Shown in pieces: positions 2,085 to 30,493 of a stretch of DNA of 64,000 bases. A model generated the notes under the pieces. It searched no databases, was not told where the DNA came from, and saw only the letters and a list, made by a program, of their open reading frames with translations. The position numbers were made by a program, and so were the translations under genes. Position 1 is the stretch's first letter. Each line of letters starts with the position of its first letter. Source of the stretch: Hydrolagus colliei (Eukaryota); NCBI GenBank assembly GCA_035084275.1, contig CM068757.1:16802001-16866000 (forward strand), in the 5' to 3' direction.

Positions 2085-2771
2085 TCAGCGAAGTCTCGGT
2101 TGTGCCTTGCACGCTTTTGCCCCCTTGCCTGGACATGGGGTGAGACTGGAGGGGTTTCCAGTCCCTCTAGCGCAAAGACGTGGGCGTGGGAGGGGCCCAG
2201 GTTTGCGGGGCCCCACTCCCCCTCCTCTCGCCCCAACAGCTGAGCCCAGCCAAACACTGGCCAGGAAGGGGAGAACCTTGTTGAGGTGACAGCGATGGTT
2301 GGGTTGAGGAGCCAAAAGATGGGAGAACATCTCCAGGGCTGGTCTGGAGAAGCCTCGCCATTGGCTGGGGACCTGGCAGCCAGGCTCCTCGGCCATCCAT
2401 TGGCTAACGGAGAGTTGACAGGCATCCTGGGAAGTCTCCCAAGGGAAGTAACCGGTCAAGACTCCGTACAGGACAACACCAAAGGCCCAGACGTCCTCCA
2501 TGTTGGACACCTTGACCCCAACCTTCTGGGCGTCTTGTGTGGAGAGTTCTGGGGGGCTGTAGGGGGAGGAGGTGGGTGGGTGTTTGACCAACAGGCCCAC
2601 CCTCCGGACCAACCCAAAGTCACACAGTTTGACCTGGCGACAATCGCCATCAAACACCAGGACGTTTTCTAGTTTGACATCTCGATGGACCAGGTCTTTG
2701 GAGTGAAGATACTGCAAAGCCATGGACAACTGCCAGGCACAGCGCTTAGAGGCTGCTTCACCAATCCCCAC
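2085..2771 (-). CDS. SBK1-like: SBK-family kinase, coding exon 3 (HRD, DFG, C-lobe, stop)
   Basis: VGIGEAASKRC...HRDVKLENVLVFDGDCRQVKLCDFGLVRRVG...SSPYSPPE...DVWAFGVVLYGVLTGYFPW...PSQWRGFS. Acceptor ctctcAG at 2773-2772; TGA at 2087-2085. Spliced CDS is 172+203+687=1062 nt = 353 aa plus stop. Confidence 0.93.
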   Translation of the reverse strand: MGIGEAASKRCAWQLSMALQYLHSKDLVHRDVKLENVLVFDGDCRQVKLCDFGLVRRVGLLVKHPPTSSPYSPPELSTQDAQKVGVKVSNMEDVWAFGVVLYGVLTGYFPWETSQDACQLSVSQWMAEEPGCQVPSQWRGFSRPALEMFSHLLAPQPNHRCHLNKVLPFLASVWLGSAVGARGGGVGPRKPGPLPRPRLCARGTGNPSSLTPCPGKGAKACKAQPRLR

Positions 2772-3562
2772 CTGAGAGAGGGGGAGGGAGAGGGAGAGGG
2801 GGGAGGGGCGTGGGGAATAGAGAGGGAGAGAAGGAAAGAGAAGTTGAACAGGAGAGAGGGGTGGGGAAGAGAGAGAGAGAAAGAAGGAGCAAGAGAGGGG
2901 GAGGAAGGGAGAGAGGGGTGGGGGAGGGAGAGAGAGAAAGGGGTAGAGAGAGAGGGAGGGAGTGGCAGGGGGGGAGGAGAGAGGGGTGAGAGGGAAAGAG
3001 AGAGAAGGTGAGCAAGAGAGAGGGGTGGGGGAGAGAGTGAGAGAGAAAGAGGGAAGGAGATGGGGAGGGAGAGAGAGGGAGATAAACAGGGAGAGCAGTG
3101 GGTGAGAAAGGGGATGGGAGTTGGGTAGGGAAAAGGAGGGGAGAAGAGAGGGGGGGAAAGAGAGAGAAAGAGAGAGGTGAGCAGGAGAGAGGGGTGGGGG
3201 GGAGAGAGAGAAAGAGGGAGCGAGGAAGGGAGAAAAAGTGGGAGGGATAAACAGGGGGAGAGAGAGGGAGATAGGGAGGGAGAGAAATAGAGAGGGAGTG
3301 AGAAAAAGGGAGAGAGAAAGAGAGAGAGAGGGAGTGGAGAAACAGAGAGACAAATAGAGAAACCGAATAAGTGAGAGAGAGGGAGAAAGAAATAGAGAGA
3401 AAGTTCTTATCAATCTGTGATTGTCAGAGACTTTAAAATTCAACCCCAACTCAACTCAACCTCAACTTGCATGGCTAGGGCTCTAACCACTGAGCTACAG
3501 AACTGTTGCTTGCGAGCGAGGCCAGGGATCTAACTACTGAGCTCCAGGACTAAGCGATTTAC

Positions 3563-3765
3563 CTGAGGTTTGATGATGCTATATAGATCTCCGATTGGAG
3601 CAAATTCCTGTATAAAACCATAATAATCATCTGTCTGGAAAGCAATTCCAAAGATATTGACAAAGAGAGGGTTTGAGCAGAGATACAGAGACAGGCTGTA
3701 TTCACGGAGGAAACTTCTCTTGGTAGTCTTCCCTTTTCTCATCAACTTCAAAGCCATGGTTGTAC
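3563..3765 (-). CDS. SBK1-like: SBK-family kinase, coding exon 2 (catalytic Lys, alphaC, hinge)
   Basis: (G)TTMALKLMRKGKTTKRSFLREYSLSLYLCSNPLFVNIFGIAFQTDDYYGFIQEFAPIGDLYSIIKPQ. Polypyrimidine ctcAG acceptor and GTAAAT donor; 203 nt, phase 1 to 0, in frame with both neighbours. Resembles SBK1 GTKMALK...FLRE...QEYAPAGDLFDIIPPQ. Confidence 0.92.
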
Positions 3766-4696
3766 CTGAGAGAGAGAGAGAGTGTAAGACAAAGACTGTG
3801 TGAGAGGGAGAGACTGAAAGAGTACGAGACAGAGAGAGGGAGAGAGACTGAGAGGGAGATGGCGAGAGAGACTGAGAGAAAGACAGATTGAGACAGAAAT
3901 AAAGAGAGAGATTAAGACAGAGTCTGAGAGAGCTACAGTGAGACAAGGAGAGACTGAGATAGAGACAGACAGATAGAGGGACTGTGCAAGAGAGAGTCTC
4001 AATGAGACTCAGGAGAAAGGAAGACTGAGCGAGAGAGATTGAGACTAGATAGATTGAGGTGTGACAGGGATGTGGATAGATACATGAGGGAGTCAGGGGA
4101 AGGAGTAAGTATGGGAGGGAGATGGATACAGCCTTGGATGAAGACATATTGGATTGAGTTGCAAGACGGAGGTGGATAGAGATTTAGGGGTGTCAGGGGA
4201 TGGATTGAGGTGTGAGAGAGAGACTTGGATGAAGTCAGGAGATGGATTGAGGTGTGGGAGGCAGATGGATAGAGACTTGGGGGGGAGTCGGGATGGATTA
4301 AGGTGTGAGAGGGAGATGGGTAGAAAATTGGTGGCGATGGATAGAGACTTGGGGGAAATGGATATAGACTTGGGGGGAGTCAAGGGATGGAGTGAGTGTG
4401 AGAAGGAGATGGATAGAGACTTGGCTGGTGTCAGAGGATGATTGAGGTATGAGAACGAGTTCTGGTTCTGAGACGCCGTCCGGCATGGAGGGCGCTATAT
4501 AAATCAAAGTTGTTGTTCTTGTTGGTTGTAGTCAGTGGATGCATGAAGGTGTGAGAGGGAGATGGGTAGAGATTTGGGGGAGATAGATAGAAACTCGGGG
4601 GAGTTAAGGGATGGAGTGAATGTGTGAGGGAGATGGATAGAATTGCGGTGAGTCAGGGGATGGATTGGGTGTGAGAGCGAGATGGATAGAGCCTCA

Positions 4697-7040
4697 GAAT
4701 CATAGAATTTTACGGCACAAAAGGAGGCCATTCGGCCCATCTAGTCTGTGCCAGCTTTGAACAAAGCAACTCAATCCCACTGCCCAGCTTTCTGCCCATT
4801 ATCTTCCTAGATAAAGATCTAATTCCCCTTTAAAAGCTGTTATGGAATCTGCTTCCACCACCTTTTCAGGCAATGCATTCCAGATTCGACCAACTCGCTG
4901 AGTGAAAACATTTCTCCTCAGCTCCCCTCTGCTTTGTTTTGAAACTATTTTAAATCTGTGACCACGAGTCACTGATTCGCCCACCAGTGGAAACAGTCTT
5001 TCCCTATTCACCCTGTCGAAAACTCTCATAATCGTATAAACCTCTATCAGGTCTCCTCTCAATCTTCTTTGTTCAAGAGAGAATAAGCCTAGCCTATCTA
5101 GCCTTTCCTCACAGCTGAAGTCCCTCATTCCTGGTACCATCCTAGTAAATCTCCTCTGCATCCTTTCCAATGCCTTAATATCCTTCCTAAAGTGTGGTGA
5201 CCAGAATTGTACACAGTATTCCAGCTGAGGCCTCACCAAAGTCTTATAGAGGTTAGTCAGCACTTCCTGACTTTTGTACTCTATACCCCTATTTATAAAG
5301 CCTAGTATCCCATATGCCTTCTTAACGGCCTTGTCTACCTGTCCTGCCACTTTCAAAGAGTCACTCTGTTCCTTCACACCCTTTAAAATTGTACTATCTA
5401 GCCTATATTGCCTCCCCTAATTTCTTCTCCCAAAGTGTATCACCTCATACTTCTCTGCATTAAACTTCATCTGCCATGTGTCTGCCCACTTTACCATTGT
5501 ATCTATATCCTCTTGCAGATGGTTACTATCCTCCTCACTATTTACTATTCTCCCTAACTTAGTATCATCTGCGAATTTGGAAACCGTACTCCCTACACCC
5601 AAATCCAAATCATTAATATATATTAAAAAGAGCAGTGATCCCAAAACTGATCCCTGGGGGGCGCCACTGCACACTTCCCTCCAGTCTGAAAAGCAGCTGC
5701 TCACCACAGCTCTCTGCTTTCTGCCAGTTGTGGATCCACGCTGCCACTGTCCCTTTAACACTGTGAGCCTCTACTTTCCTAATAATCCTCTCATGTGGCA
5801 CTTTGTCAAATGCCTGTTGAAAGTCCATGTAAACTACACCAACTGCGCTGCCCTCGTCCACCCATTCTGTTACAGCGAAAAAATTTTCTATCAGATTTGT
5901 AAGGCAAGTCCATGCTGGTGGCCTTTATCAGGAAAGCCATATATTTTTCTGAGTGAAGATCTATCTTGTCCCTGATTATCGACTCTAGAAGTTTGCCTAC
6001 TACTGACGTTAGACTGACTGGCCTGTAGTTCCCAGGTTTGCCCTTCTGCCCCTTTTTATACAGGGGAGTAACATTAGCAACCTTTAGGTATAGTCCACCA
6101 CAGTTAAACTTGGGATCAACAAAAGTGGGAGAGCAGTTTAACAAGGGAGAAGAGCAAAGTCAAAGTATCGCTCAAGGTATAAATCAGGAGATTAGCGGAG
6201 CATGTAGTAAAGGAAAGACACTAATTGTAGGTGATTTTAACCTGCACATAGACTGGGACAACCAAATTGGGAAAGGTAAGATAGAAGAGGAGTTTATAGA
6301 ATGTATTAGAGATAATTCCTGTGCTTCCCTTCGTAACCTAGGATGTATCCCATCCGGACCGAGTGACTTATCTACCTTGAGTGCCATCAACCTTTTTAGT
6401 ACTTTCTCTCTGGTTATGCTTATCTTATCCATTTCTACTACCCTCTCCAATAATACTGTGACATTGGCTGCATCTTCTTCTCTTGTGACCTCCGGCGTGG
6501 AGGGCGCTATATAAATCTAAGTTGTTGTTGTTATTATTGTTGTTGTGAAGATAGAGGCAAAGTACTCATTCAGTACATCAGCCATGCCCTCTGCCTCCAC
6601 AATAAGATTTCCTCCTTGGTCCCTTATTGGCCCCACCCTACCCTTGACCAATCTTTTACCCGTTACCCTTTTTACCCTATTACCCTTAATATGTTTGTAA
6701 AATACCTTAGTGTTACCTGCTAATTGTTTCTCGTGCAGTCTTTTTGCCCCTCTAACTTCCTGTTTTAGTTCTCTCCTGCACTTCCTATAGTCCGATTGGT
6801 TGAATTCTGTATACTTGTCATAAGCCTCCTTTTTTGCTTTATTTTCACCCCAATTGCCCTAGTCCTCCAGGGAGGTTTGGATGCCCTACATTTTACCTTT
6901 TTTGGAATGTTTCTAACCTGTGCCCGAATTATCTCTTCCTTGAAGACTGCCCACTGCTCGTTAGCTGTTTTACCTGCCAATCTTTCACCTTGGCTAGGTC
7001 CCGCTTTAGCTCACTGAAATTAGCCTTCTTCCAGTTGAGT
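4697..7040 (-). mobile_element. CR1 LINE fragments (RT C-terminus, 3' UTR, more 5' pieces) in kinase intron 1
   Basis: SLKVAGQVDKAVKKAYGILGFINRGIEYKS...LEYCVQFWSPH...GHRFK...FTQRV..IWNALP; YMDFQQAFDKVPH; PGNYRPVSLTSVVGKLLE; (agaatcat) tail. Confidence 0.93.
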
Positions 7041-7044
7041 GTCT

Positions 7045-8305: not shown

Positions 8306-8312
8306 GAGATAC

Positions 8313-8484
8313 CACGGAATCGATGGGTGACAAGCTGGACTTTTCCGTATGTTCCAGATCCCAGATCTTTGACCACTTGGTAATGGTCAGAGATGTTGAT
8401 CGTGTCCAAGTTCTGTGATGTGAGGAGCATCAGCTCCTCAATGAAGAGATCGGGGCCAAGATTAGAACCAGGAAGGGCAGCCAT
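8313..8484 (-). CDS. SBK1-like: SBK-family Ser/Thr kinase, coding exon 1 (ATG, Gly-rich loop)
   Basis: MAALPGSNLGPDLFIEELMLLTSQNLDTINISDHYQVVKDLGSGTYGKVQLVTHRFR+G has a GxGxYG loop. Phase-1 donor GTATCT at 8312. An acceptor (ctcgcAG, 8490-8489) lies 4 nt before the ATG, so an upstream exon exists. Orthology among SBK1/2/3 is unresolved. Confidence 0.9.
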
Positions 8485-8494
8485 TATCCTGCGA

Positions 8495-10115
8495 GAGAGG
8501 GGGTGGGAGAGAGTGTGGGGGAAGGGGAGAGAGGGAAAGAGTGGGGGGTGGAGAGGGAAAGAGAGAAGCAGATGGGGATGAGACGGGTAGGGGAGAGAAT
8601 GGGAGAGATAGAGAGAGAGAGAGACATAGTGGGGCAAGAGGGAGAGAGGGCGAGACAGATGGAAGAGTGGGAGGTGAAGAGAGAGGGAGAGAAAGAGGGA
8701 GGGAGAGAGAGGGGAGGAGTGATGAGAGAGAGGTTGGGAGACAAGCAGAGAGCGGGAGAGGGGAGAGATGGTGAGAGAGAGTGGGGAAAGGGGAGAGAGG
8801 AAAAGAGTGTGAGATGAGAGACAAGCAGAGAGAGAGAGGGAGGAAGGGAATAGCGGGTAGAAATGGAGAGAGGGTGATAGTGGGATTAGAGAGGGAGAGA
8901 GGGAGGGAGAGGGAGGTTTGGAGAGAGGCAGTGAGAGGGAGAGATGGATAGGTGGAGACAGAGGGAGAAGTGGTGAGAGAGAGTGGGAGGTGAAGAGAGA
9001 AGCAGGGAGAGGGGAGAGATGGAGAGGTGGGGAGAGATGGAGTGGTGGAGACAGAGGGAGATAGGATGAAATAGAGAGTGGGAGAAGGGGAGACAGGGAA
9101 AGAGTGGGAGGTGGAGAAAGACAGAGAGAGAGTGAATGGCGAGGGAGATGGAAAGTGGGGTGAGAGGGAGAGAGAGGGGGAGAGGGGGAGGGAGAATGAG
9201 GGAGTATGTGGGAGGTAGCAAAGAGAGGGGTAGGTGGGGAGAGCGGGGGGGAGTTAGAGGGGGAGAGAGGGAGAAGGGGAGAGAGGGAGAAGGGGAGAGA
9301 GGGGGGGAGAGAGGGAGAGACGGGGAGCGAAGGAGAGGATGAAGGGGGAGGGGAGAGAGAGGGGTGGAGAGAGGGAGAGGGGGAAGAAAGACAGGGGGAG
9401 AGAGGGGAGAAGGTGGGGAGAGAGGGAGAGGGAAGAGTGGGAGAAACGGGGAGAGAAGGGGAGATTGGCAGAGAGAGGGGGGTAGGGAGATGAGGAGAGA
9501 GAGGGTAATGATGGTTGTGGGGGAGATTTGGATGTATGGAGGGAGGGGATAGAGGGGGATGAAGGTGGGGGTGAGAGAGGGTGAGAGAGACGGGGAGAGG
9601 GGGAGGAGAAGATAGAGAGGGGAGAGAGAGAGGGTGGGTGGAGATGGGGGAGAGGGGAGAGAGATGGGGAGAGAGGGAGGTGGGAGTGGGGAAGATAGAG
9701 GGGGAGAGATGGACATGGGAGGGGGAGAGAGAGGGGGGAGAGAGGGAGAGGGGCAGATAGGTGGTAGGGAGAGAAAAAGAGGTAGAGAGAGTGAGAAAGA
9801 GGGCAGTAGGAGAGAGCGAGGGTGTGGGGAGAAAAAGGGGGAAAGCGGGAGAGAGAGAATAAGAGGGGGAGAGTGAGGAGAAAAGCAGAAGGGGGGGGGG
9901 GCAAGGAGAGGGGCGTGGGGGAGAGAATGATGTACGTTGGGGAGAATGGGAGAGAGTGAGGGAAGGGGTGGGGAGAGAGAGAGATGCGGGAGAGATAGAT
10001 AGAGAGAAAGATAGGGAGAGGTGGGGTGAGGGAGAGAGGGAGGGGGTTGGGAGAGGTGGGGAGCAAGAGGTGGGAGTTGGGGGAGGGGGGAGAGAGAGAG
10101 AGAGAGAGAGAGAGG
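8495..10115. repeat. GA-rich polypurine low-complexity tract
   Basis: Almost exclusively G/A on the plus strand. Confidence 0.9.
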
Positions 10116-10354
10116 AACCGAGAGGGTTAGAGAAATAATAATAATCCTGGCATTTGAGACAATTCCTTAACATATCATTGAGACATCTCAAAGCGCTTCA
10201 CAGGACACACTGTTTAGTGTAGTAACCGTTTGTGTGGCTGTATCATGTAGTGACTGTGTGTTTGCCTGTATAATGTAGTGACTCTGTTCTGTGAGCGAAA
10301 CGTTGCAGCCAATTGCGCCCAGTGATGTCCTCACAGACAGCTGTGGAGAGGAGT

Positions 10355-11420
10355 GAGTGAGAGAGACTGTGAGTGAGGGAGAGTGTGTGAGTGAGGGAGA
10401 GTGTGAGTGAGGGAGTGAGGGAGTGTGAGTGTGAGTGAGGGAGAGAGTGTGTGAGTGAGGGAGAGTGTGAGTGAGGGAGAGAGTGTGTGAGTGAGGGAGA
10501 GTGTGAGTGAGGGAGAGAGTGTGTCAGTGAGGGAGAGTGTGAGTGAGGGAGAGTGTGAGTGAGGGAGAGTGTGAGTGAGGGAGAGAGTGTGTGAGGGAGA
10601 GAGTGTGTGAGTGAGGGAGAGTGTGAGTGAGGGAGAGTGTGAGTGAGGGAGTGTGTGAGTGAGGGAGAGTGTGAGTGAGGGAGAGTGTGAGTGAGGGAGA
10701 GAGTGTGTGAGGGAGAGAGTGTGTGAGTGAGGGAGAGTGTGAGTGAGGGAGAGTGTGAGTGAGGGAGTGTGTGAGTGAGGGAGAGAGTGTGTGAGGGAGA
10801 GAGAGTGTGAGTGAGGGAGAGTGTGTGAGTGAGGGAGAGTGTGTGAGGGAGAGTGGGAGTGAGGGAGTGAGAGTGTGTGTGAGAGAGAGTGTGTGTGAGA
10901 GGGAGAGAATGGTAGTGTGTAAGAGATTGTGTGTAATGGAGAGAATAAGAGTGTGTAATGGAGATTAAGAGAGATAGTGAGTTAATGAGCGAGTGAGGGA
11001 GAGAGAGACTTTGTGAGTTTCAGAGTGAAAGTGTTTGAGAGAGTGAGTGTGGGTGTGTGTGAGAGATTGAGTGTGAGTGAGTGAGAGTGTAAGAGAGTTT
11101 GAGAGAATGAGTGGGTGAGTGTGAGTGAGTGACTGAGTGAGGGAGAGAGAATGTGAGAGAATCAGAGTGAAAGTGTGTGAGAATCATAGTGTGAGAGATT
11201 GTGTGAGTATGTGAGTGTGAGTGTAAGAGGGCGAGTGTGTTAAAGTGAGTGTGTGAGAGTGAATGGGTGTGTGAATCAGTGAGTGAATGTGTGAGAGATT
11301 AGAATGAATGAGTGAGTGAGTGTGTAATGGAGAGAATAAGTGTGTGTGAGTGAGAGGGAGAGATTGAGAGAGTGTGTAATGGAGAGAATAAGAGAATGCT
11401 GTGAGGGAGTGTGTGAGAGA
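10355..11420. repeat. (GTGAGTGAGGGAGA)n minisatellite, decaying rightwards
   Basis: Direct tandem copies of gtgtgagtgagggaga(ga). Confidence 0.9.
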
Positions 11421-12884: not shown

Positions 12885-14190
12885 CCACAGTAACGCTCCC
12901 TCTGCACCGTGGTGTGTGTGTCTATCTATGTGTGTCTCTATCCTTGTTTGTGTGTGTCTCTGTGTGTGTGTGTGTCTCTATCTGTGTGGGTGTGGGTGTC
13001 TATGTGTCTCTATGTGTGTGTGGGTGTGTGTCTATCCTTGTTTGTGTGTGTCTCTATCTGTGTGTGTGTGTCTCTATCTGTGTGTGTGTGTCTCTATCTG
13101 TGTGTGTGTGCGTCTCTATGTGTGTGTCTCTATGTGTGAGTGTCTCTATTTGTGTGTGTGTGTGTGTATGTGTGTCTCTATGTGTGTGTGTCTCTATCTG
13201 TGTATATGACTGAGAGACAGTGAGAGAAAGAAAAAGAAAGCGAGAGGTCAGGGTTAGAGACACAGTAACGCTCCCTCTACACTGTGTGTACATACATACA
13301 TACATGTTTGTGTGTATATGTGTATGTGTTTCTATCTGTGTGTATGCGTGTGTCTCCAAGTGTGTGTGTGTGACTGAGAGGACAGAGAGATACAGTAAAG
13401 CTCCCTTACACTGTGTACGTGTGTCTCTGTCCGTGTGTGTGCCTATTTGTGTGTGGGTGCGTGTGTGTGTATATGATTGAGAGAGTGAGAGAGAGATATA
13501 GAGAGAGACAGAAAGCGAGAGGTCAGGGTTAGAGACACAGTAAAGCTCCCGCTACACTGTGTGTGTGTGTGTGTGACTGAGAGAGAGAGTGAGAGTAAGA
13601 GAGACAGAGAGAGAGAAAGGGAGAGACACGGTAAAGCTGCCTTTACTCCCCAGGCCAGGGTTAGAGACAGAGTGAGGGAGACAGGTAGAGACACAGTAAT
13701 GCTCCCTCTACCCCGGTATGTGTGTGACTGTGTGTGACTGTGAGAGAAAGTGAAAGAGATACACAGAGAGAGAGAGAGAGACAGGGAGAGACACATTAAA
13801 GTTTCCTCCACACTCCCAGGTCAGGGTTACAGACAGAGAGACACACACACACAGTAACGCTCTTCTACACTGTGTGTGTCTCTCTATCTGTGTGTATGTG
13901 TGTGTGTATATATGACTGAGAGAGTGAGAGAGAGTGAGGGAAAGAGAGACAGAGAAAGAGAGAGATTAGAGACACAGTAAAGCTCCCTCTACACTGTGTA
14001 TGTGTGTCTCTCTATACATATATCTGTGTGTGTGTGTATGTGTATGACTTGAGACAGAGAGAGACACAGTAAAGCTCCCTCTACACTGTATGTGTGTGTC
14101 TCTGTCTCTGTGTGTGTGTGACTGAGAGCGAGAGAAAGAGAGAGAGAGAAAAGGGAGAGACACAGTAAAGCTCTCTCTACCCCGTGCGTC
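12885..14190. repeat. TG/GA composite repeat with about 10 copies of CACAGTAAAGCTCCCTCTACACTGTG
   Basis: Variants near 12888, 13261, 13391, 13537, 13693, 13851, 13972, 14066 and 14161. Confidence 0.85.
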
Positions 14191-15184
14191 CACACTCCCA
14201 GGTCAAGGTTAGAGGCAGAAGATGATTTATTACCTGTTTGGAATCACAGTACTTGTCTGTCTGATGCGTGGAGACAGAGAGAGGGGGAGATAGACAGAGA
14301 GAGAGACTGAGAGAGAGACTGGGAAATAAAGAGAGAGAGAGAGAGAGACTGAGAGAGCGACTGCAAGAGTGACTGAGAAAAAGAGGCTGAGAAAGAGAGA
14401 CTGAACGAGGAGAGGAAGAGGGGGAAGAGACTGAAAGAGAGAGACCGAGAGAGAGGGAGAGAGAAAAAGAGACTGAGAGAGAGACTGATATATATATAGA
14501 GAGAGAGACTGAGAGTGTGACTGAGAGAGGGGCAGAGAAAGAGAGACTGAGAGAGAGGGACACTGAGAGAGAGTGACTGAGAGAGAGAGACTGCGAGAGC
14601 GATAGAAAGAGAAATGTAGAGACACAGAGATAAACAGGAAGACAGAGAGAGAGACTGAGAGAGAGAATGAGAGTGAGCGAGACTGAGAGGAGAGAGAGAT
14701 TAAGAGAGAGAGAGAGAGCTTGTGAAGGGCTGAAGTTTGATGTAAAACAGTTGTCATATGAGTTCACCTCAAACCAACCTCTGTGATCAGCCCCTCTCTC
14801 TCAGTCACTCTCTCTCTCTGTCTCAGTCTCTCTCTCAGTCACTCTCTCCCCCAGCCTCTGCCTCTCTCTCTCTCAGTCTCTCTCGCTCTCTCTGTTTTTC
14901 TCTCTCTCTTTCAGTCACTCTTTCTCTCTCAGTCTCTCTCTCCCCCTCTTTCTGTCTCTCTCTCAGTCTTCTTTTTCGCTCTCTCAGTCACTCTCTCTCA
15001 GTCACTTTTTTTTCGCTCTCTCCCTCCCTCAGTCTCTCTCTCTCTGTGTCACTCTCTCTCTCTCTCTCTCTCTTTCTCTGTCACTGCCTCCATTCTCTCT
15101 CAGTCACTCTCACACTTTCTCTCTATCACTGCCCTAGTCTCTCTCTCTCTCTCGGTCTCTCTGTCACTCTATGTCATGTATATC

Positions 15185-16107: not shown

Positions 16108-16146
16108 AGTTATTGTACGAGGCCATGACTGATTTCCATCACTGTG
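16108..16146 (-). other. 23-bp-spacer RSS of V1
   Basis: Minus strand CACAGTG - ATGGAAATCAGTCATGGCCTCGT (23 nt) - ACAATAACT. Confidence 0.93.
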
Positions 16147-16462
16147 AGAATGTAGGGAGAGACAGCGCAGTGATACACAGCACTGTCAGACAGCCGCAGG
16201 TCAGAGATGGACAAGCTGATGGAAGACCTGGATTTCAGCTGAACAGTGAAACGATTTTCAAATACATTTCCTTTAAGTTGATTGTCACTCCTAGAATCTC
16301 TCCGAAATATAAACTCTGGCTGCTTGCATTGGTGACTTCGGTACCAGTAGAAATAGTAATAGCGTTCAGTTGTGGAACAGGTACAATGTAAAATCACACT
16401 TTCTTCTTCTTCCTTAACCATCGTGGCAGCTTCCTGACTGACAGTGTCCCCACCACAGAGAT
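16147..16462 (-). CDS. T-cell receptor alpha/delta-type V segment 1 (TRDV-like), open frame
   Basis: LCGGDTVSQEAATMVKEEEESVILHCTCSTTERYYYFYWYRSHQCKQPEFIFRRDSRSDNQLKGNVFENRFTVQLKSRSSISLSISDLRLSDSAVYHCAVSPYI has Cys23, Trp41 and DSAVYxC104. Acceptor tattacAG; a 23-RSS follows directly. Confidence 0.9.
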
Positions 16463-16753: not shown

Positions 16754-16802
16754 CTCTCATCAAGGTTCCCAGCACAAGACAGACAACAACCAACTGTCTC
16801 AT
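16754..16802 (-). CDS. Leader exon of TCR V segment 1
   Basis: ATG...MRQLVVVCLVLGTLMR+G, 49 nt, hydrophobic. Phase-1 donor GTGACG joins in frame to the V exon (..MRD-LCGG-DTVSQ). Confidence 0.75.
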
Positions 16803-20000: not shown

Positions 20001-20091
20001 GCAAGATCATATAATTAGATATACATGCTGTTTTAGTTTGTCTTATTACAAGATTGCCCTCTTATGATTTAACAGCAGAACAACTTGCTAA

Positions 20092-20130
20092 AGTTTTTGT
20101 CCAGATCCTCCATACCTTGACAGCATTGTG
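20092..20130 (-). other. Near-consensus 23-RSS of the 20.1-kb V pseudogene
   Basis: Minus strand CACAATG - 23 nt (plus strand ccagatcctccataccttgacag) - ACAAAAACT. Confidence 0.88.
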
Positions 20131-20612
20131 CATGGCTTCACACAGTAAAATACACAGCACTGTTTCCTAATAATAATCCCTCCAAAAAAAACTAAATAAT
20201 AATAAAAAATGTGTCATTTCAATCCATGACTGTTTGTGGGACACTACTTTGTGTAATTCGCTGCCACGTTTCACCCACAAATACACAGTCAATTCACTTT
20301 ACAGTACATTCTGTGAAGCGCTTTGAGACGTTGATAAGATGTGAAAAGCTCCATATCAAATGAAGGATTATTATTATTATCAGGACTGTGCTAATTCTTC
20401 ATTTGAATTCATCACTCGTTTTATTGATGGTGTAGGAAGATCATGTTGGGAAGTCAGGGCTCCTGTAATCCTTCTCTGCAACACAGGAGTTCTGCTGGAA
20501 CGTGGAGATATCAGTGATTGTCTTGAATGAACAGAGAAATTTCACACCTTGTCCCTCGCGGTTTTGCTGATGTTTCAGTGATCGATTGTTTCCCGGGATC
20601 TTGCAGTGTTTC
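20131..20612 (-). pseudogene. TCR V pseudogene split by a SINE
   Basis: Minus strand reads ETIDH*NISKTA/REGQGVKFLCSFKTITDISTFQQ...DFPT*SSYTINKTSDEFK*RISTVL [SINE 20168-20380] IGNSAVY(+2 nt)YCVKP, then an RSS. Stops, frameshifts, WYRQ missing. Confidence 0.8.
20168..20380 (+). mobile_element. 5'-truncated SINE inserted into FR3 of the V pseudogene
   Basis: Family body and (TTA)n tail; the flanks rejoin to ...TVL-IGNSAVY on the minus strand. Confidence 0.8.
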
Positions 20613-20689
20613 CTGTCATCACATTTAGTTTGTTGCATGTTTGTATTATGTGAAGGGCTGGGGCATGTTGGTGAGGAGAGGGGCGTGCC

Positions 20690-22440
20690 CACCCAGAGCC
20701 CCGCCCACTCACACAGAGCCCCGCCCACACAGAGCCCCACGCACCCACACAGAGCCCCACCCACCCATGCAGAGCCCCGCCCACACAGAGCCCCGCCCAC
20801 TCACACAGAGCCCCGCCTACACAGAGCCCCACCTACCCACACAGAGCCCCGCCCACTCACACAGAGCCCCGCCTACACAGAGCCCCACCCACCCATGCAG
20901 AGCCCCGCCTACCCACACAGAGCCCCGCCCACTCACACAGAGCCCCGCCTACACAGAGCCCCGCCCACCCACACAGAGCCCCGCCCACCCACACAGAGCC
21001 CCGCCCACCCATGCAGAGCCCCGCCTACCCACACAGAGCCCTGCCCACCCATGCAGAGCCCCGCCTACCCACACAGAGCCCCGCCCACCCACACAGAGCC
21101 CCACCCACCCACACAGAACCCCACCCACCCACACAGAACCCTGCCCACCCACACAGAGCCCCGCCCACCCACACAGAGCCCCGCCCACCCACACAGAGCC
21201 CCACCCACCCATGCAGAGCCCCGCCTACCCACATAGAGCCCCGCCTACCCACACAGAGCCCCACCCACCCACACAGAGCCCCACCCACCCATGCAGAGCC
21301 CCGCCTACCCACATAGAGCCCCGCCCACCCACACAGAGCCCCACCCACCCATGCAGAGCCCCACCCACCCACACAGAGCCCCGCCCACCCATGCAGAGCC
21401 CCACCCACCCACACAGAGCCCCACCCACCCACACAGAGCCCCACCCACACAGAGCCCCGCCCACCCACACAGAGCCCCACCTACATAGAGCCCCACCCAC
21501 CCACACAGAGCCCCACCCACACAGAGCCCCGCCCACCCACACAGAGCCCCACCCACCCACACAGAGCCCCGCCCACCCACACAGAGCCCCGCCTACATAG
21601 AGCCCCACACACCCACACAGAGCCCCACCCACCCACACAGAGCCCCACCCACCCACAGCCCCGCCCACCCACACAGAGCCCCGCCTACATAGAGCCCCAC
21701 ACACCCACGCGGAGCCCCGCCTACCCACACAGAGCCCCACCCACCACAGAGCCCCGCCTACATAGAGCCCCACCCACCCACACAGAACCCCACCCACACA
21801 GAGCCCCACCCACCCACACAGAGCCCCACCCACCCACAGCCCCGCCCACCCACACAGAGCCCCGCCTACATAGAGCCCCACACACCCACGCGGAGCCCCG
21901 CCTACCCACACAGAGCCCCACCCACCACAGAGCCCCGCCTACATAGAGCCCCACCCACCCACACAGAACCCCACCCACACAGAACCCCACCCACACAGAG
22001 CCCCGCCTACATAGAGCCCCACCCACCCACACCGAGCCCCACCCACACAGAGCCCCACCCACACAGAGCCCCACCCACCCACACAGAGCCCCACCCACCC
22101 ACACAGAGCCCCACCCACCCACACAGAGCCCCACCCACACAGAGCCCCACCCACCCACACAGAGCCCCACCCACTCATGCAGAGCCCCACCCACCACAGA
22201 GCCCCGCCTACATAGAGCCCCACCCATACACACAGAGCCCCGCCCACCCAGAGCCCTGCCCACTGAGAGCCCCACCCACCCACACAGAGCCCCACCCACT
22301 CATGCAGAGCTCCACCCACCACAGAGCCCCGCCCACTGAGAGCCCCACCCATACACACAGAGCCCCGCCCACCCACACAGAGCCCCGCCCACCCAGAGCC
22401 CTGCCCACCCAGAGACACACACACACAGAGCCACGCCCAC
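20690..22440. repeat. GC-rich minisatellite, unit about CACAGAGCCCCGCCCACCCA (about 20 bp)
   Basis: About 1.75 kb of tandem variants; source of the many HRAPPT/GGALCG pseudo-ORFs. Confidence 0.95.
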
Positions 22441-22929
22441 ACAGCCGCAGCTCCGCCCACCCAATGCTCTACCCTCCTATAGACATAGCCACCCAGACAG
22501 ACATGGCGTGTGTTGGCCAATGTGTGGGACTGCAGACTCACCGACTACGTGACACCAAACTGTTCACAAATAATCTTGGAATGACAGACCTCATTTGTGA
22601 AAAATATATTGTCGGTTAAAGGCATTAACATCCCTGGAAATTGTAATCCACGCATTGATTAACAACCGGGTTCTACTTACTTACCTTTAAATCTATCTTA
22701 ATCTGAACAGAAACGTGTGTGTAGCGTAATGAAACAAGCCTAATGTATCACACTGACAAGCCTGGGTGTCGAATCCAGGTCGACTGGCTTGCAAGGCGAG
22801 TCCTGCTCTAACCACTGTGCCACATGATCCACAGCCTCTGTACACTTGCCTTCATATTATTGTTGTGTAACCACATCAGTATGTTGAAAGCACTAAGTTA
22901 AATGTATGAGAGGAAATCATGATTGCCTG

Positions 22930-22968
22930 ACTTTTTGTATGGGTAATCTGCCCTCCTGGAGCAGTGTG
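22930..22968 (-). other. 23-RSS of V2
   Basis: Minus strand CACACTG - CTCCAGGAGGGCAGATTACCCAT (23 nt) - ACAAAAAGT. Confidence 0.9.
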
Positions 22969-23263
22969 GGTTACGCACAGTAATACTCCGCGCTGTCACC
23001 CACAACAGCCTTCACCAGCAACAAATCAATCAATTTTTGTTCCTTGTTCAGCTCAGCAGTGAAACGTACTGGAAGGCCAGGAGATTTGTTTACCGTTCCC
23101 GAGCTAAATATCATGAGCAAGTAGTGAAGAGCTCCATCGGGATATTGCCTGTACCAGAAGGCAGTATTTATTGTTGAATAATTGCAGATTAGTCTGATGT
23201 TTTGTCCTTCAACTATTGTTATCTCGGGTGGATATTGGGATATTATATTTTTCCCGTTAATTT
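22969..23263 (-). CDS. TCR alpha/delta-type V segment 2 (TRAV-like), with in-frame TAA after YYCA
   Basis: INGKNIISQYPPEITIVEGQNIRLICNYSTINTAFWYRQYPDGALHYLLMIFSSGTVNKSPGLPVRFTAELNKEQKLIDLLLVKAVVGDSAEYYCA* then CC and the heptamer. Acceptor gttgcAG at 23265-23264. Confidence 0.88.
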
Positions 23264-23699: not shown

Positions 23700-23747
23700 G
23701 CACTGGGAGCATCTACACAAACTTACTGACTATGCTGAGGATTGCCA

Positions 23748-23763
23748 TCAGTAGCTGGCAGTG
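23748..23763 (+). promoter_or_regulatory. Candidate CTCF-binding element upstream of V2
   Basis: TCAGTAGCTGGCAGTG against consensus CCASYAGRKGGCRS (2 mismatches), about 50 nt upstream of the candidate V2 ATG. Motif match only. Confidence 0.35.
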
Positions 23764-25505
23764 GCCTGTCATGCTGGCTCCTGGAGTGCAGGCGGAGAGT
23801 GGATTCCCTACCTGTGAACATGGCTATTTAGTTGTTTCAGTTACAAGTTGTGAGGGTGTGGCCGATCTGATATGCGCAGCCAGTTATTATCTAAAATTGT
23901 AGGCGTTTCACACTAATCAAAGAATCTTGAACTTGGTGTGTTGGTGATTGATTGCAAGTTGATATGGGGTAGGATGAAGGGAATAGATGCCATTTCACCC
24001 GCACTCAAAGGTTTACTTTCTGCATTCAATGCTGCGGTGACACACTGCCTCTTTTCGTGCTAATTTCTCGTAAGAGTCAGAACGTTATTGATTCAGTACC
24101 AGGTCAGAAATTTCAGCTATGACTGGACTGAATTTCAAATTCAGGACTGCGTGAAGACTGTATTGTCAACAAAACAATTGTCGACAAAGCAGTCACTCTA
24201 TGCATGCGTGTGGGGAAGTTACTGTGTTCAAATTGTCAATCCTATTTGTCTTCAAAACATGGTGTAATTATTTTTACACAAACAAATTTTTATACAGCAC
24301 CACCAACATGAAAAGCATTCTATAAAAGGCAAGCATTAATGTAATTATTATCACTTTCCAACCTGTTTGGAAATACATGCAAGGCAGAAGGCTCAATTAA
24401 CGTAGTTCTGTAATTGCAAAATTTAACTAAACTAGGACAATTTTAGTTTTGTTCAGGGCAATTTTATTCTGTTTCCAAAAATATACTGAAGCAGTTTTCC
24501 ATATTGACGATAAGAAAAGCTACCACATTTATTATGGCAGTAAAATCCACTTAACAACAACAACATCACATTTATAGATCGCCTTTCATGTCGGGAGGAT
24601 GGCCGAAGGCACTGAAAAATATGGAACGCTTCACAAATGTCATTAAGGTTGGCTGCGTATTTGGGTGATAGACAATAAGTTAGAAAACGTCTCACAGAAA
24701 TTGAATCTTGAACAACATTATGATTGTTCATGCTTTAGACAAACAAGCCTTAATACTCTCCAGCTGCAGTGTTTATAATGTAAATGAGGAAACCGATATT
24801 AACTGTCACAGGAAGCACATGTTATAGCTGCTGAGGAAGTGAGTTACTGAATGGCACGTGGCAAGTTATGTCAGTTGCAACTCATGTTGTCTGTGTGTTT
24901 GTTATATCACTTGCTGGTGGATGGCAGCTTTAGACGGTGCACAATTGAGGACATTTCACAGCAATGTTTTTTGTAGCTGTTAACATTCCCTGGGTGAACA
25001 GAGCTATATTAATACAAGTTTCTGTTTTTTATGTATTTCCCTATGAAGATACGATACAATAACACGTACATGGGGCATGTAGCAACACCCATAATGGAAG
25101 CATTTTCAGGCTATCTTTGTGACATTATGATTGTAATTCATAAAAATATTAATAATCTTTTTTTTTTTAATTGCACCGTATCACTTATACAAAGTGCTTC
25201 ACAGGGCTTTTCAGAATGTACTGCAAATGCATCGACTGCATATTGTGTGAGAAAAAAAGCGAAAGCCTAGTTTGTGCATCGGGACCCATTAGATTTAATG
25301 ATATTAAAAATATTTTGAAGGAAATATTGCACCTTGAATCCATCAGTTGACTAATAACAACATTCCAACTTACTGCAAGACAAACAGAGGCATATATACA
25401 GAGTAAGGAAACATGCCCCACGTTTCGCTTTGCCGGGAATGGAACCCTTGTTTCTCGCTTGAGAGGTGAGTGCTTTAACCACTGAGCTACAGGACTCCAC
25501 GTGAT

Positions 25506-25536
25506 AGTTATTGTAGGGCGATAGCCCTGAACTGTG
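25506..25536 (-). other. Defective RSS (15-nt spacer)
   Basis: CACAGTT - CAGGGCTATCGCCCT (15 nt) - ACAATAACT; the nonamer is identical to that of V1. Confidence 0.75.
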
Positions 25537-25830
25537 CAGTTTGATGCTCAGTAATAAGTCTGTCACTCTCACTTGGGATATATTTAAACGGACAGTGTTC
25601 CCCACTTTATCCACAAACATTGATAAACGTCCTTTGGTAAAGTCAGCATATTGTGGGCTGTTGCTGGTGGATGTCTTTAGGATATATTCTCAAGCTGTAT
25701 TGTGATAGTGACGGTACCAGAACCATCTGTTGTACTATAATTACACTGCAGATGCACATCATCCCCTTCTTCCAACTGTCACATCATCAGATCTGCTGTA
25801 TGGTTCCTTCATTGGTTCTCCTCCAACACT
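25537..25830 (-). pseudogene. TCR V pseudogene
   Basis: Minus strand, across frameshifts: EEGDDVHLQCNYSTTD / WFWYRHYHNTA*EYILKTSTSNSPQYADFTKGRLSMFVDKVGNTVRLNISQVRVTD / YY* (TGT to TGA; the SAV codons are missing), then a degenerate RSS. 5' boundary approximate. Confidence 0.85.
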
Positions 25831-26096
25831 GACGTGTCTTTGATCAACCAGGGGCCTCACACGTGCAGCAATATCCACATTTCAATTTGTCCACAGGACA
25901 TTCACGAGTTCCACATGTGTACTACATATGGATTCCTGTATAGCATTGGTATCAACACTCGGCCACAATCGAGGTGCCTGATTCCCAGCAGGGACATATT
26001 GGATAAGTTTCCTTACTCTAAACACGCACCTTGGTTTACCTTGCAGTAAGTAGGAATTTTGTTATTAGGCAATTAACGGTTGCTTTCCAGTGTTTT

Positions 26097-26450
26097 CTTA
26101 TTAATGATAATAATAATCCTTGCATTTGATATAACCCTTTGCACATCTTATCAACGTCTCGAAGCTCTTCACAGAATATACTGTAAAGTGAATTGACTGT
26201 ATATTTGTGGGCAAAACACAGCAGCCAATTGCGCACAGCAGAGTCCTCCACAAACAGTTGTGGATTGAAATTGACCAATTTGATAATTGTGGGGTTTTTT
26301 TGACGGATTATTATCAGGCATGTCTGTGTCTGTGTGTGTGTGTGTATATGGAGTAAGGAAACTTGCCCACAGTTTTGCTCTGATTTTCCTGGATTTGAAA
26401 CACAGGTCTCATGCTCGTAACGCGAGTGCTCTAACCACTGAGCTACAGGA
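26097..26450 (-). mobile_element. tRNA-derived SINE, near full length (further copies at about 1-215, 10135-10350, 27350-27745, 28900-29070, 33985-34230, 37250-37480, 45920-46100)
   Basis: Same head (ctgtagctcagtggttagagcac...), body and (ATA)n tail. Confidence 0.75.
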
Positions 26451-27764
26451 GCTTGACATAATAATTAACTCAATCTACGTCTGCTGGTGGGACATTGTTG
26501 TGTACAATGGATGCCTCGTTTCGCCCACAACAACAACAAACAAAATTGCCTTTACAGCACCTTGCACATCGGTAGGCATCCAACAGACACAATACTTGAC
26601 ACTATGTTCTGTGAGGCGATCTGAGACACCTCAATGAAGAGATTAGGCAGATTTTCAAAATACGCCTGTTATGAAATTAACCAGGTGAATGAAGTGGAAG
26701 ACCCTGAGTGTGTGCAAAGGGCTAGACAATTCCCTAATGTGTGTTGGCTTCACATCTTCTGGAGAAGGTGGCATTTGGTAACGAGGTGAAATGAGCCAAT
26801 CAGAGGGTTCAAAACCAAAGGGGAAGAGCTGTGTCACGTCACGTTAGTGTTTACTCAGCTGTCTCTGCCCCAGTTGAAAATTAGTTGAATGTTTCCGTCC
26901 TTCCCCATTTCCACTATATGATTGGGTTACAGCAGTTTGGATACAAAACATCACCTTCCCAGCAAAATTAATTGTTGCTCGGTTTATTTCACTAAATGCC
27001 ACTTCATCTTTTCCCGTTTATTTTTTAAACCAGAAGTCTGACAAGGATGTGGAAACCAATCACTATGCTTATGAGTACACATTGAAATGTGAGTTGCAAG
27101 AATAATCCTTGCGTTTGATATAGCGTCTGATCGTGACATTGAGACGTCACTGTGTAATTCACAGAAGGTTCTGATAAATGTTGCTGCGGTGTATTTTGTA
27201 GACAACACGAGGAAACCAATTGCATACTGCGCTGTCTCACAAACATTCATACATCGAGATTTTATTAGATGGATTACTAGCCCAAATATGCAAGATCAAA
27301 TTAGTCTCTACGTACTGATATACAGATAAATACTACTACTAATATTAATGATTATAATAATCCTTGAATTTGATACAGCAGCTTATCATGTCTTTGAGAT
27401 GTTAATAAGCAATGTACAGGTTGTACTGTGAAGTGAATTGACTGTACATTGATAGACTGAATACAACAACAACAACAACAACTTTGATTTATATAGCACC
27501 CTCCACGCCGGATGGCGTCTCAGAGCGCTTACAAAAACCAATTGCGCACAGCGGTCTCCCACAAACATACATTCTTTGAAGAAGAACTTTTTTTAAAACA
27601 AATTATTATCTCCAGAAAATGAACCGATAGTGGTCTAAAAACAGATTTCCTATTCATTGCTTTCCCAACCCTTTAACCTGATGGTTATGAAACCGAGGTT
27701 CTATGATTTGTGAATCGAGCGCTTTATCCGTTGAGCTACAGTAATCCCAGAATTCTTCTGTACA

Positions 27765-27895
27765 TAAAACACAAAATACTACAGATGCTGGGAGCTGAAA
27801 CAAAAACAGAAGTTGCTGGGGAAACTCAGTAGGTCAGGCAGCATCCATGGAGAAAGCAAAATGAGTCAACGTTTCAGGTGTACAACTTCGCTCAA
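27765..27895. mobile_element. Penelope-like element terminal fragment
   Basis: aaaacacaaaatactacagatgctgg...gttgctggggaaactcag...gagtcaacgtttcagg, also present at 43473-43560. Family assignment is from recalled similarity to chondrichthyan PLE ends, not from a search. Confidence 0.5.
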
Positions 27896-28365
27896 ACTTC
27901 GCTCCCCCATTACCCCAGTCCTTGCCAGACTTCACTGTCTCCCTATCTCAGAGAGGATCGACTTCAAGATCCTCTCTCTTGTCTTCAAATCCCTCCACTC
28001 CTCTGCTCCCCCCTACCTCTCTGATCTCCTCTCTCAACCCAGCACCCGCTGCCTTCGCTCCTCTGGGTCTGGCCTCCTCCATGTCCCCCCGAATCCTCCA
28101 CTCCACCTCTGGCGGCCGTGCCTTCAGCCACTATGCCCTGAGGCTCTGGAATTCCCTTCCTCACTCGCTTCGCCTCCTCGCCCCCTCTCTTCTCAGCTTC
28201 AGGTCCCAGCGAAAGACCTTTCTCTTCAACCATGCCTTTGGTCACCTATCTCTGCCCCTGCCCCTGCCCCTGGCTCGGTCCCGGGATCCGCTATTGTGGA
28301 GCGCTCTGAGATGCCGTCCGGCGTGGAGGGCGCTATATAAAGCAAAGTTGTTGTTGTTGTTGCTG
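27892..28365 (+). mobile_element. L2 LINE 3' end with (GTT)n tail
   Basis: SPITPVLARLHCLPISERIDFKILSLVFKSLHSSAPPYLSDLL...GGRAFS..ALRLWNSLP; tail gagggcgctatataaagcaaagttgttg. Confidence 0.9.
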
Positions 28366-28705
28366 TTGAAGGAATCGAGAGGAATGTTTTATGCTGGTCT
28401 GCCCTTCGAAGTCCTTGTCATCACCAGTGAGAGCCCTGGAGCACTGCAGACTCTCCTCCATCAGAAAACAGACCAAAGACCATCGGGGCTGTTGGGCGGC
28501 AAGGGTGTTGGGGGGGTGGGGTGGGGGTTTTGGGGGGTGGGGTGGGTTGGGGGGTGGGGTGGGGTGGGGGTTTTGGGGGTTGGGGTTTTGGGGGGTGTTG
28601 GGGGGGTTTTGGGGGGTGGGGTGGGTTGGGGGTGGGGGGATGGTGAGGTGGGGTGGGGGGTGAGTTGAGGAGCTAGGAAGGATTCTTTACTAAGAACACA
28701 GTTCA

Positions 28706-28724
28706 TCGCCACCATCTGGCGGTA
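28706..28724 (-). promoter_or_regulatory. Candidate CTCF-binding element at the distal edge of the V cluster
   Basis: Minus strand TACCGCCAGATGGTGGCGA resembles the CTCF core. Motif match only. Confidence 0.3.
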
Positions 28725-30225
28725 GCAAGGCAGTACCGCATGATTTTATCGTTAATTTGAACACACAATAACTGACAGTAAACGATTATACTCCTCAAAT
28801 GCATTAACATCAGGAGAGATGTAGAAAACGGGAATTCATTTATCTGGTTGATGGCTCTCTAAAAATTGATAGTATTAAACAGACCCGAGGCGCGGAGGAA
28901 TAATAATACTCATTGCATTTGATGTAACTGTTTCCACATCTGATGAGAAGCTCACATAATTTACTGTAAAGTGAATTAACTGTACATTTATCGGTGAAAT
29001 GCATCAGAGAATTGCACACAGTAGGGTCCCACAAAGATTTGCGGATTGAAGTGACCAATTTATCATTTTATACAATTAATACAAGTAATTTAACGTAATT
29101 ACATTAAATGTAACGTAATTTACAATGGTAAATGTTTATTTACATAAACACGTGATAAGGAATAAAAATGTATTGGACATTTACAAGACACCACAAAAAA
29201 GGAAAAACTCAAAACGTGATCCGACCTAATCGGGGCTAAATAAATCCAGATTGTGTTGTTCTTGAAAAAGTAATAATATCTGGGGTCAATGAAGTTGGAG
29301 TTGTAATACTGCACACAGCCACTGGGGAGGTGTTATATTGTGATGAGGTAAAGTATAATATAATTATACATGATATAATACAGTATAATAACACATATAG
29401 TATATAATACAGTGCAGCACGGCCACCTGCTGTACATATGCTTGTCAATGCCTATCTGCCTGGACTTGGCGACCAATTAAATTCGCCCCCCACCCTATTC
29501 AGTGTGTTATCACTGTAGGATGTTGGGGAGTCAGAAAACTCGCAAGAAGATGCTCCTGGAATTTTTAATTATTTTTTTCCCTAGTTCTTGCCATCGGTGC
29601 ATATTTGTCATTCTTATCAAAGGTAAGGTTCTCGGTGATAGTCAACAATGAACAGCACAGATTAAAAGTTCAGTATTTATTATTAAGAACATCATACATA
29701 AGAAGTAGGAGCAGGAGTAGGCCATTCGATCATGGCTGATATTCCATTGTAACTCCAGCTACCTGCCCTATCCCCATACCCCCTTAATCCAACTGCATCC
29801 AACAGTATCCAACAGCACTCCAAAGCAGTATTTCAGCCATTCTGCTCCTTTGGAACTCCTTCTGGGAAACCCTCATACTCTCTCCCTTTCTCTCCGCGTT
29901 CAAGGTCTGATTCAATGTCTACCACTACCGCGCTTTTGGTCCCCTGTCTAATCCCACCTGTTCAGCCCCCTCCCCCAATTCGTCCTCCAAGCCCAGATCA
30001 GGAAGAAGGCGTGGACTGTTCCACACTTTGGGAAATCTGTGAGGTGGAATGCACTGGCTGCCACATTCCACTCAAAAATATATTTTCACTCCACTTTGTG
30101 ATGTCTGAGTCATGTGCTATGAAGTGCAAACATTATTATTACAGCTGATTGTAACTGCTGAAAACACAAACAGGTTGATGAGCGTGATTTTACAGATTGG
30201 AGAGAGTTGAGGCTCTGGCTGTTAC

Positions 30226-30493
30226 CCTGCAGAGAGATTTCGACTCGCTTGCTCTCTGGTGATGTAGACTTTCGTCTGTCTATGTGTGTGTATGTGTATT
30301 TACACCAGTAATCCCCAGCACTGATCTCGGATGGGGTGAAGTTCTTCCCTGGAGCTGGCTGTGATCTGATCCGCTCGTGTCTCTGAATAAAGAGAAGTTG
30401 CTGCCAGGATAGTTGCCAGGACACAAGATCTCAGCACTTTCCCTGTTGCAAACACCCGGGAATACAGCTTCAGGTTGGGTTTCTGGAGTGGAT
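30226..30493 (-). pseudogene. Ig-superfamily domain exon (LRC/FcR-like C2/I type) with two -1 frameshifts
   Basis: Acceptor ttccAG, donor GTAACA, 268 nt. Adding one base at each of two sites gives a 270-nt phase 1-1 exon: DPLQKPNLKLYSRVFATGESAEILCPGNYPGSNFSLFRxHERIRSQPAPGKNFTPSEISAGDYWCKYTYTHIDRRKSTSPESKRVEISLQ. Confidence 0.75.

Follow-up and report, generated by a model that had tools for sequence, protein, structure and literature searches.

The DNA considered here is a stretch of 64,000 nucleotides (nt) from Hydrolagus colliei (assembly GCA_035084275.1, contig CM068757.1, positions 16,802,001 to 16,866,000 of the forward strand), which is referred to as the window and whose own numbering is used for all coordinates given below. 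The window harbors an intact kinase gene of the SBK family, four variable (V) elements of T cell receptor (TCR) type, the nearest of which (V1) lies 7.6 kb from the kinase start, and an Ig-like (immunoglobulin-like) pseudo-exon. V segments, kinase and Ig-like relic all reside on the minus strand within 28 kb. An earlier note on this DNA had pointed to this co-orientation, and every feature was indeed found on the minus strand; orientation by itself is of little weight. The same note had raised the possibility that the neighborhood preserves an ancestral linkage of rearranging receptors with genes of the leukocyte receptor complex (LRC), a proposal that is weighed below against other explanations.

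The TCR V gene segments

The V elements extend over 16.1-25.8 kb and comprise two complete segments, V1 and V2, as well as two decayed relics. V1 consists of a leader exon (16754-16802; MRQLVVVCLVLGTLMR, phase 1, GT donor), an intact V exon (16147-16462), which features the equivalents of Cys23, Trp41 and Cys104 (..ILHC..WYR..AVYHCAVSP) and matches the Pfam family V-set at E=4e-17, and a recombination signal (16108-16146) made up of the heptamer CACAGTG, a 23-bp spacer and the nonamer ACAATAACT. In an analogous arrangement, V2 is composed of a leader exon (23727-23772; MTGHCQLLMAILSIV) with a GTAAGT donor, which is similar to the leader found in V protein P0122 of Callorhinchus, an intact V exon (22969-23263; ..IRLICNY..WYRQYPDG..DSAEYYCA; Pfam V-set E=3e-9) and a recombination signal (22930-22968; CACACTG, 23-bp spacer, ACAAAAAGT). 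In both segments, a V-set domain bearing the Cys-Trp-Cys triad is combined with a split leader and, directly 3' of the V exon, a signal whose heptamer and nonamer are separated by a 23-bp spacer. Three matches to the pattern CACANTG-N23-ACAANAA were counted in the window, where chance would give 0.01, and each is located on the minus strand, at the 3' end of a V-like sequence.

In relic 1 (20092-20557), a B-strand trace (GVKFLCSFKT) and a framework-3 end (SAVYF.C) have survived on either side of an inserted repeat copy, followed by an intact-looking signal (CACAATG-23-ACAAAAACT; 20130-20092). Relic 2 (25354-25769), which was recognized by reading its open reading frame (ORF), is more decayed: it retains a framework-3 remnant (..RLSMFVDKVGNTVRLNISQVRVTD), is truncated by a tRNA-derived short interspersed element (SINE) at 25425-25496, and yields weak tblastn matches to Callorhinchus V proteins and to V2 (E=2e-4 to 0.02). 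The truncating stretch itself is tRNA-like on the minus strand, reaches the Rfam tRNA threshold (30.5 bits) and is not called by ARAGORN; it is suggestive of a tRNA-derived SINE head, and related repeat pieces are also found in the V2 leader intron and in relic 1. Across the window, this head was the only Rfam match, while ARAGORN reported no tRNA.

The kind of receptor to which V1 and V2 belong was read from their matches to solved structures and to other V genes. The PDB match lists of both segments mix antibody constructs with TCR chains, and the top whole-chain matches are antibody constructs with several V domains (tandem nanobodies, single-chain variable fragments); in the case of V2, the highest one is a construct with two V domains. 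Among chains with a single V domain, TCR alpha/delta chains score best for both segments, at about 57-61 bits versus about 41-45 bits for single antibody V domains, the best being TCR alpha and delta V domains for V1 and TCR alpha chains for V2; this assignment as alpha/delta rather than Ig was judged against mammalian structures. V2 and eight V proteins of Callorhinchus milii (P0121-P0128) are about 60% identical, the translated signal spacer being conserved as well, while a word-indexed protein search returned no close relative of V1. With the TRAV/TRDV genes, including this Callorhinchus family, the V segments of the window share not only the split leader, the V-set domain and the 23-bp-spacer signal but also the framework-3 pattern F-T-A-x-L...DSA-x-Y-x-CA. 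A scan for joining (J) segment motifs found none anywhere in the 64 kb, no constant (C) type exon was present among the ORFs scanned, and diversity (D), J and C elements are all missing from the window.

Judged by these features of their sequence, V1 and V2 appear to be genuine germline V segments of the rearranging, TCR alpha/delta-like type. The V segments named in the earlier note were thereby borne out beyond its list, as Pfam V-set matches, leaders, 23-bp-spacer signals and two additional relics were found. The coexistence of two intact and two decayed elements represents the birth-and-death pattern that is usual for V arrays. A reading of V2 as the leaderless "supporting" V of NAR-TcR was rejected, since its leader exon with the GTAAGT donor (23772-23727) matches the Callorhinchus leader.

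The same inventory bears on the idea that the V elements form an orphon cluster, that is, a piece of the main TCR alpha/delta array which was translocated by segmental duplication or transposon-mediated rearrangement and is not rearranged. In keeping with such an origin, there are just four V elements within 10 kb, two of which are decayed, 38 kb on one side are free of V elements, D, J and C are lacking, and the region is dense in long interspersed elements (LINEs), SINEs, long terminal repeat (LTR) elements and minisatellites. On the other hand, V1 and V2 retain open frames, leaders, splice sites and canonical signals, which is unusual for long-standing orphons, and the conservation of the V2 signal spacer with Callorhinchus V genes points in the same direction. 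On balance, an orphon cluster is regarded as rather unlikely.

The SBK-family kinase gene

The kinase gene extends from 8484 to 2085 on the minus strand, is intact and comprises three coding exons with AG/GT splice sites. Exon 1 (8313-8484) encodes MAALPGSNLGPDLFIEELMLL...THRFR together with the first base of the codon for Gly58 and ends in a GT donor; matching first exons were detected by tblastn in six shark and ray loci. Exon 2 (3563-3765; GTTMALKLMRKGK...IIKPQ), which is flanked by an AG acceptor and a GTAAAT donor, is likewise conserved, with a tblastn match of its own in each of the six loci. Exon 3, including the stop codon (2085-2771), encodes VGIGEAAS...HRDVKLEN...DFG...SPPE..., and the ORF to which it belongs (2085-3449) matches Pfam Pkinase at E=5e-26. 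The exon architecture is conserved, in that three tblastn matches of identical order and boundaries are present in each of the six loci. The spliced product of 353 amino acids (aa) retains GSGTYGKV, MALK, HRDVKLEN, DFG and SPPE, i.e., a complete catalytic domain as judged from Pfam and from the motifs read in the spliced product. The claim of an SBK-type kinase in the earlier note is confirmed by the Pfam match, the three spliced exons and the intact catalytic motifs.

In the catalytic loop HRDVKLEN (exon 3, about 2690-2667), Leu replaces the Pro of SBK1, SBK2 and the shark and ray orthologues (HRD-x-K-P-E-N), and the same Leu is encountered in the fragment P0129 (84% identical) as well as in tetrapod SBK3 sequences. 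Regarding the surroundings of the gene, the first minisatellite array of the window (747-2080) begins just 5 bp past the kinase stop codon, and intron 1 contains a LINE 3' fragment (4800-6160).

Relationship of the kinase to SBK2 and SBK3

A word-indexed protein search with the window kinase returned only proteins of 50-60% identity, the top four being "SBK1-like" proteins of Heterodontus, Scyliorhinus torazame, Mustelus and Carcharodon. An exhaustive search added P0129, a UniParc fragment of 181 aa that is 82-84% identical to the window kinase. The relationships were resolved by a careful maximum likelihood (ML) tree of 50 sequences, in which named anchors were taken from cluster look-ups: chinchilla, whale shark and salmon for SBK1, coelacanth, tinamou and pigeon for SBK2, and turtle, lizards, echidna and platypus for SBK3.

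In this tree, six proteins from sharks and rays group with the window kinase and P0129 in one clade (support 100/99), which is sister (100/97) to a clade comprising all SBK2 and SBK3 anchors and, in addition, a gar and teleost "dkey-8e10.3" group. True SBK1 of chinchilla, whale shark and salmon forms a separate clade, in which the whale-shark SBK1 (P0142) sits with mammalian SBK1. Because the cartilaginous-fish clade is sister to SBK2 plus SBK3 while true SBK1 stands apart, the view that the window kinase is a cartilaginous-fish co-orthologue of both SBK2 and SBK3 is supported at the level of sequence. Whether the kinase is SBK2/3-like, a point on which the proposal of the earlier note hinged, is accordingly answered in the affirmative by the tree, with the caveat of the approximately unbiased (AU) test (p=0.105) that is taken up below.

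With SBK2 and SBK3 of bony vertebrates, the window kinase shares the family, its sister clade holding coelacanth and bird SBK2 along with turtle, lizard and monotreme SBK3, and with SBK3 sequences in particular it has the HRD-x-K-L-x-N variant in common. It differs from them in diverging before the split of SBK2 and SBK3, so that as a co-orthologue it would belong to neither, and in being just 43-48% identical to both. Neighbor genes of 19q13.42, where human SBK2 and SBK3 are located, are not present in the window to corroborate synteny. No SSC5D, zinc-finger or further host gene was found beside the kinase in the 64 kb, a distance too short for a fair synteny test.

A closer likeness exists to the "SBK1-like" genes of sharks and rays (Heterodontus, Scyliorhinus torazame, Mustelus, Carcharodon, Leucoraja and Mobula), which share with the window kinase not only the clade but also the three coding exons, the N-terminal motif LGPDLFIEE(L/M)MLL and a DAQKVG stretch. 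The identity of 50-60% is modest, however, and V segments are missing within 10 kb of their loci. Judging from the position of P0142 in the tree, the database label "SBK1-like" is misleading, as the true shark SBK1 is a different gene.

Several of the bird "SBK2-like" entries (cluster of P0143) group with scavenger-receptor models named "DMBT1"; they look like fused models of SBK2 and a neighboring SRCR gene. SSC5D, the neighbor of human SBK2, would fit a conserved synteny with these SBK2-SRCR fusions. The SBK2/3-type loci of gar and tuna carry no annotated neighbor genes within 10 kb and are uninformative for a linkage of SBK with the LRC in bony fishes.

Adjacency of kinase and V segments in the assembly and in other species

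In this assembly, V segments are indeed adjacent to an SBK2/3-type gene. The stretch of 7.6 kb between the kinase and V1 consists largely of minisatellite and low-complexity sequence (e.g., the arrays 9248-9453, 10345-10907, 12929-13203 and 14287-14718), a composition which would suit an assembly artifact in which the kinase and the V cluster have been falsely joined across repeats. Arguing to the contrary, the window has no run of N, the arrays are short relative to modern read lengths, and the sequence bears no mark of a junction. A false join is rated as very improbable.

The earlier note had supposed the adjacency to be undescribed, and no report of an SBK2/3-type gene beside V segments was found in the searchable literature. 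No publication was retrieved in which SBK1, T cell receptor, shark and synteny occur together; "SBK2" was met alongside "leukocyte receptor complex" only in an unrelated cancer-immunotherapy study. Hence, the adjacency itself appears to be new to the literature, while a shared ancestral block of immune receptor loci is a well-known idea.

For comparison, the orthologous kinase with flanks of 10 kb was inspected in Heterodontus, S. torazame (two contigs), Carcharodon, Leucoraja and Mustelus, amounting to six loci of five species. In none of these elasmobranch loci did tblastn or a motif scan reveal V or Ig exons in the two 10-kb flanks of the kinase.

The Ig-like pseudo-exon

The third element of the proposed linkage, an Ig exon of LRC type, fared less well than the other two. 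A stretch of 268 nt at 30226-30493 on the minus strand is isolated, has a good acceptor and a good donor and resembles an Ig-domain exon; it requires one or two changes of frame to encode a single domain. Given that 268 is not a multiple of 3, the open frame of a C2/I-type exon of phase 1-1 is absent. Instead, the Ig motifs are distributed across frames, with "PLQKPNLKL" in the first, "AEILCPGNYPGSNFSLFRD" in the second and "AGDYWCKY...VEISLQ" in the third, a layout which fits a putative 270-nt exon of phase 1-1 that has lost two single bases.

Searched separately, the pieces matched no Pfam family and no Ig chain of the PDB. When the frames were joined with an X at each junction, whereby no stop codon was crossed, the best matches remained below threshold, namely Ig_C19orf38 (E=0.008, 17 bits at a cut-off of 23.2) and Ig_2 (E=0.09, 13 bits at a cut-off of 27), and the joined sequence gave no Ig match in the PDB. 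The AlphaFold model of the joined sequence reached a mean predicted local distance difference test (pLDDT) score of 51, which is too poor for a meaningful fold search. The region is single-copy within the window, and the whole window contains no other Ig-type exon or F-strand motif; the signal, multiple Ig, transmembrane and tail exons of a receptor gene are consequently not seen.

In relation to LRC-type receptors such as LILR and KIR, the resemblance is confined to motifs (a P-x-KP-x-L start, L-C plus F-x-L-x-R/K in the B-C region and D-Y-x-C-x-Y in the F strand) and to splice sites typical of Ig-domain exons, whereas the relic of the window is frameshifted, has no significant sequence match and lacks partner exons. 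From its sequence, the exon is best described as an isolated, presumably dead relic of some receptor gene of the immunoglobulin superfamily (IgSF). What stands of the original claim is a splice-sited, Ig-like stretch at 30493-30226; its LRC-type identity, for which motif resemblance is the sole basis, is not shown. A survey has reported that sharks possess no LRC-type genes (Akula et al. 2014, PMC4016189).

Beside the pseudo-exon, 31 nt upstream of its acceptor, lies a stretch of 124 nt (30525-30648, minus strand) with Ig-like scraps in different frames ("PPSLTLALTQTLPPG" and "DLKRICVTRRVFCE") and a GT donor at its end. This stretch may represent another Ig exon relic that has suffered an internal deletion, though no search supports this.

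Repeats and the remainder of the window

Outside these features, 185 further ORFs of at least 60 aa, filtered for low complexity, matched solely transposon families (reverse transcriptase, endonuclease, RNase H, integrase and protease). Large minisatellites occupy 747-2080, 10345-10907, 20687-22444 and 31115-33478, with periods of 12-24, 16-84, 20-36 and 20-39 nt, respectively; they reach up to about 120 copies, give rise to long spurious ORFs on both strands and fill much of the remaining window.

On the minus strand at 47300-52400, the remains of an LTR retrotransposon pol gene (aspartyl protease, reverse transcriptase, RNase H and integrase), identified by Pfam matches on separate ORFs alone, are interrupted by nested LINE fragments. 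The 3' fragments of one LINE family are found at 38067-38837, 41831-42166, 44188-45265 and 49015-49860, in addition to the copy in kinase intron 1, and are recognizable by a reverse transcriptase tail reading ...LEYCVQFWSPH(Y/F)RKD...RGDLIEVYKI.... At the protein level, the two best copies share 84% identity, and the family also occurs in the shark and ray loci (tblastx).

Interpretation of the neighborhood

The neighborhood is probably a local or lineage-specific arrangement, in which the V segments next to the kinase gene belong to a V array, at its edge or in its interior, or form a small satellite V cluster. The local arrangement is the simpler reading, and an "ancestral" linkage has no support so far; at the six elasmobranch loci, the kinase is free of V and Ig exons up to 10 kb on each side.

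According to the ancestral proposal, rearranging V genes and the future genes of 19q13.4, comprising SBK2/3 and LRC-type Ig receptors, formed one block in the ancestor of jawed vertebrates that is still visible in this window. The placement of the window kinase on the SBK2/3 side of its family, the single strand shared by V segments, kinase and Ig-like relic within 28 kb, and a catshark Ig-domain gene model spanning the orthologous kinase speak for this proposal, as does the fact that current models derive antigen receptors and MHC from a single ancestral block (PMC12227049, PMC10751288). More specifically, shark IgH, some IgL, TCR alpha/delta, PSMB5 and UrIg2 are linked in an "antigen receptor complex" that is derived from the 9/12/14 paralogue of the major histocompatibility complex (MHC) (PMC12227049; PMC10751288). 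It is this very reconstruction, however, which assigns Ig and TCR genes to the precursor of the human 9/12/14 paralogue without including 19q13.4, and neither SBK nor the LRC is mentioned in the two publications (PMC12227049 and PMC10751288). Moreover, the five elasmobranch species are devoid of V and Ig exons in the kinase flanks inspected, the Ig relic is not demonstrable as LRC-type, and one window of one species cannot establish ancestry. Taken together, a preserved ancestral linkage is considered quite unlikely.

Several observations nevertheless weigh against the local arrangement next to an SBK2/3-type gene. First, the comparison with other species covered 10 kb per side, and linkage at the scale of 100 kb to Mb could still be conserved. 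Second, in Scyliorhinus torazame (CM105044.1, about 81.09-81.13 Mb), a gene model for an Ig-domain protein of 643 aa spans the whole kinase gene on the same strand. This model shows faint matches to ig, Ig_2, Ig_3 and Ig_C19orf38, of which Ig_2 and Ig_C19orf38 are the same faint families as in the window relic. An exon scan for the model found none inside the 37 kb of the kinase locus. The model could be a shark IgSF receptor gene that carries the kinase in an intron; it keeps an association of SBK with IgSF genes alive, and an IgSF receptor next to the kinase may be old. Third, an alternative tree joining the cartilaginous-fish kinase clade with SBK1 was not rejected by the AU test (p=0.105). 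Finally, the use of V1 and V2 in TCR transcripts is a prediction from germline sequence.

Under a local arrangement, RAG would join V1 and V2 to D or J segments that carry signals with 12-bp spacers and are expected outside the window. Were the J and C region to lie on the far side of the kinase, rearrangement of V1 or V2 by deletion would remove the kinase gene from the chromosome concerned in those T cells. The kinase would be a bystander rather than an immune gene; every catalytic motif is present, and its mammalian relatives, human SBK2 and SBK3, are heart-enriched kinases (PMC7438927).

A gene of unrelated function in such a place has counterparts in other TCR loci: trypsinogen genes reside inside TRB, and olfactory-receptor genes as well as DAD1 flank TRA. 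These cases, too, feature an intact, unrelated gene within or next to a group of V segments of the same orientation. These arrangements are conserved across many species, whereas the adjacency of kinase and V segments was not seen at short range in elasmobranchs.

Implications

As read here, the locus amounts to routine annotation, which provides a few new germline V segments and a cartilaginous-fish counterpart of SBK2/3 that has been misnamed "SBK1-like". That this counterpart marks a block together with LRC-type IgSF receptors and V segments of TCR alpha/delta type is distinctly improbable. The catshark Ig-domain gene over the orthologous kinase is notable in this context because LRC-type receptors have been reported to be absent from sharks (PMC4016189).

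If such a block were nonetheless true across sharks, rays and chimaeras at a scale of 100 kb to Mb, it would provide physical evidence that rearranging receptors once neighbored the future receptor complex of 19q13.4. It would thereby supply a link that is missing from current models of the proto-MHC and of antigen receptors, and it would overturn the report of sharks without LRC-type genes. The locus would be relevant to the origin of adaptive immunity only if the neighborhood proved common to cartilaginous fishes, in which case a 19q13.4 marker beside TCR V segments would add to the reconstructions of the ancestral block.

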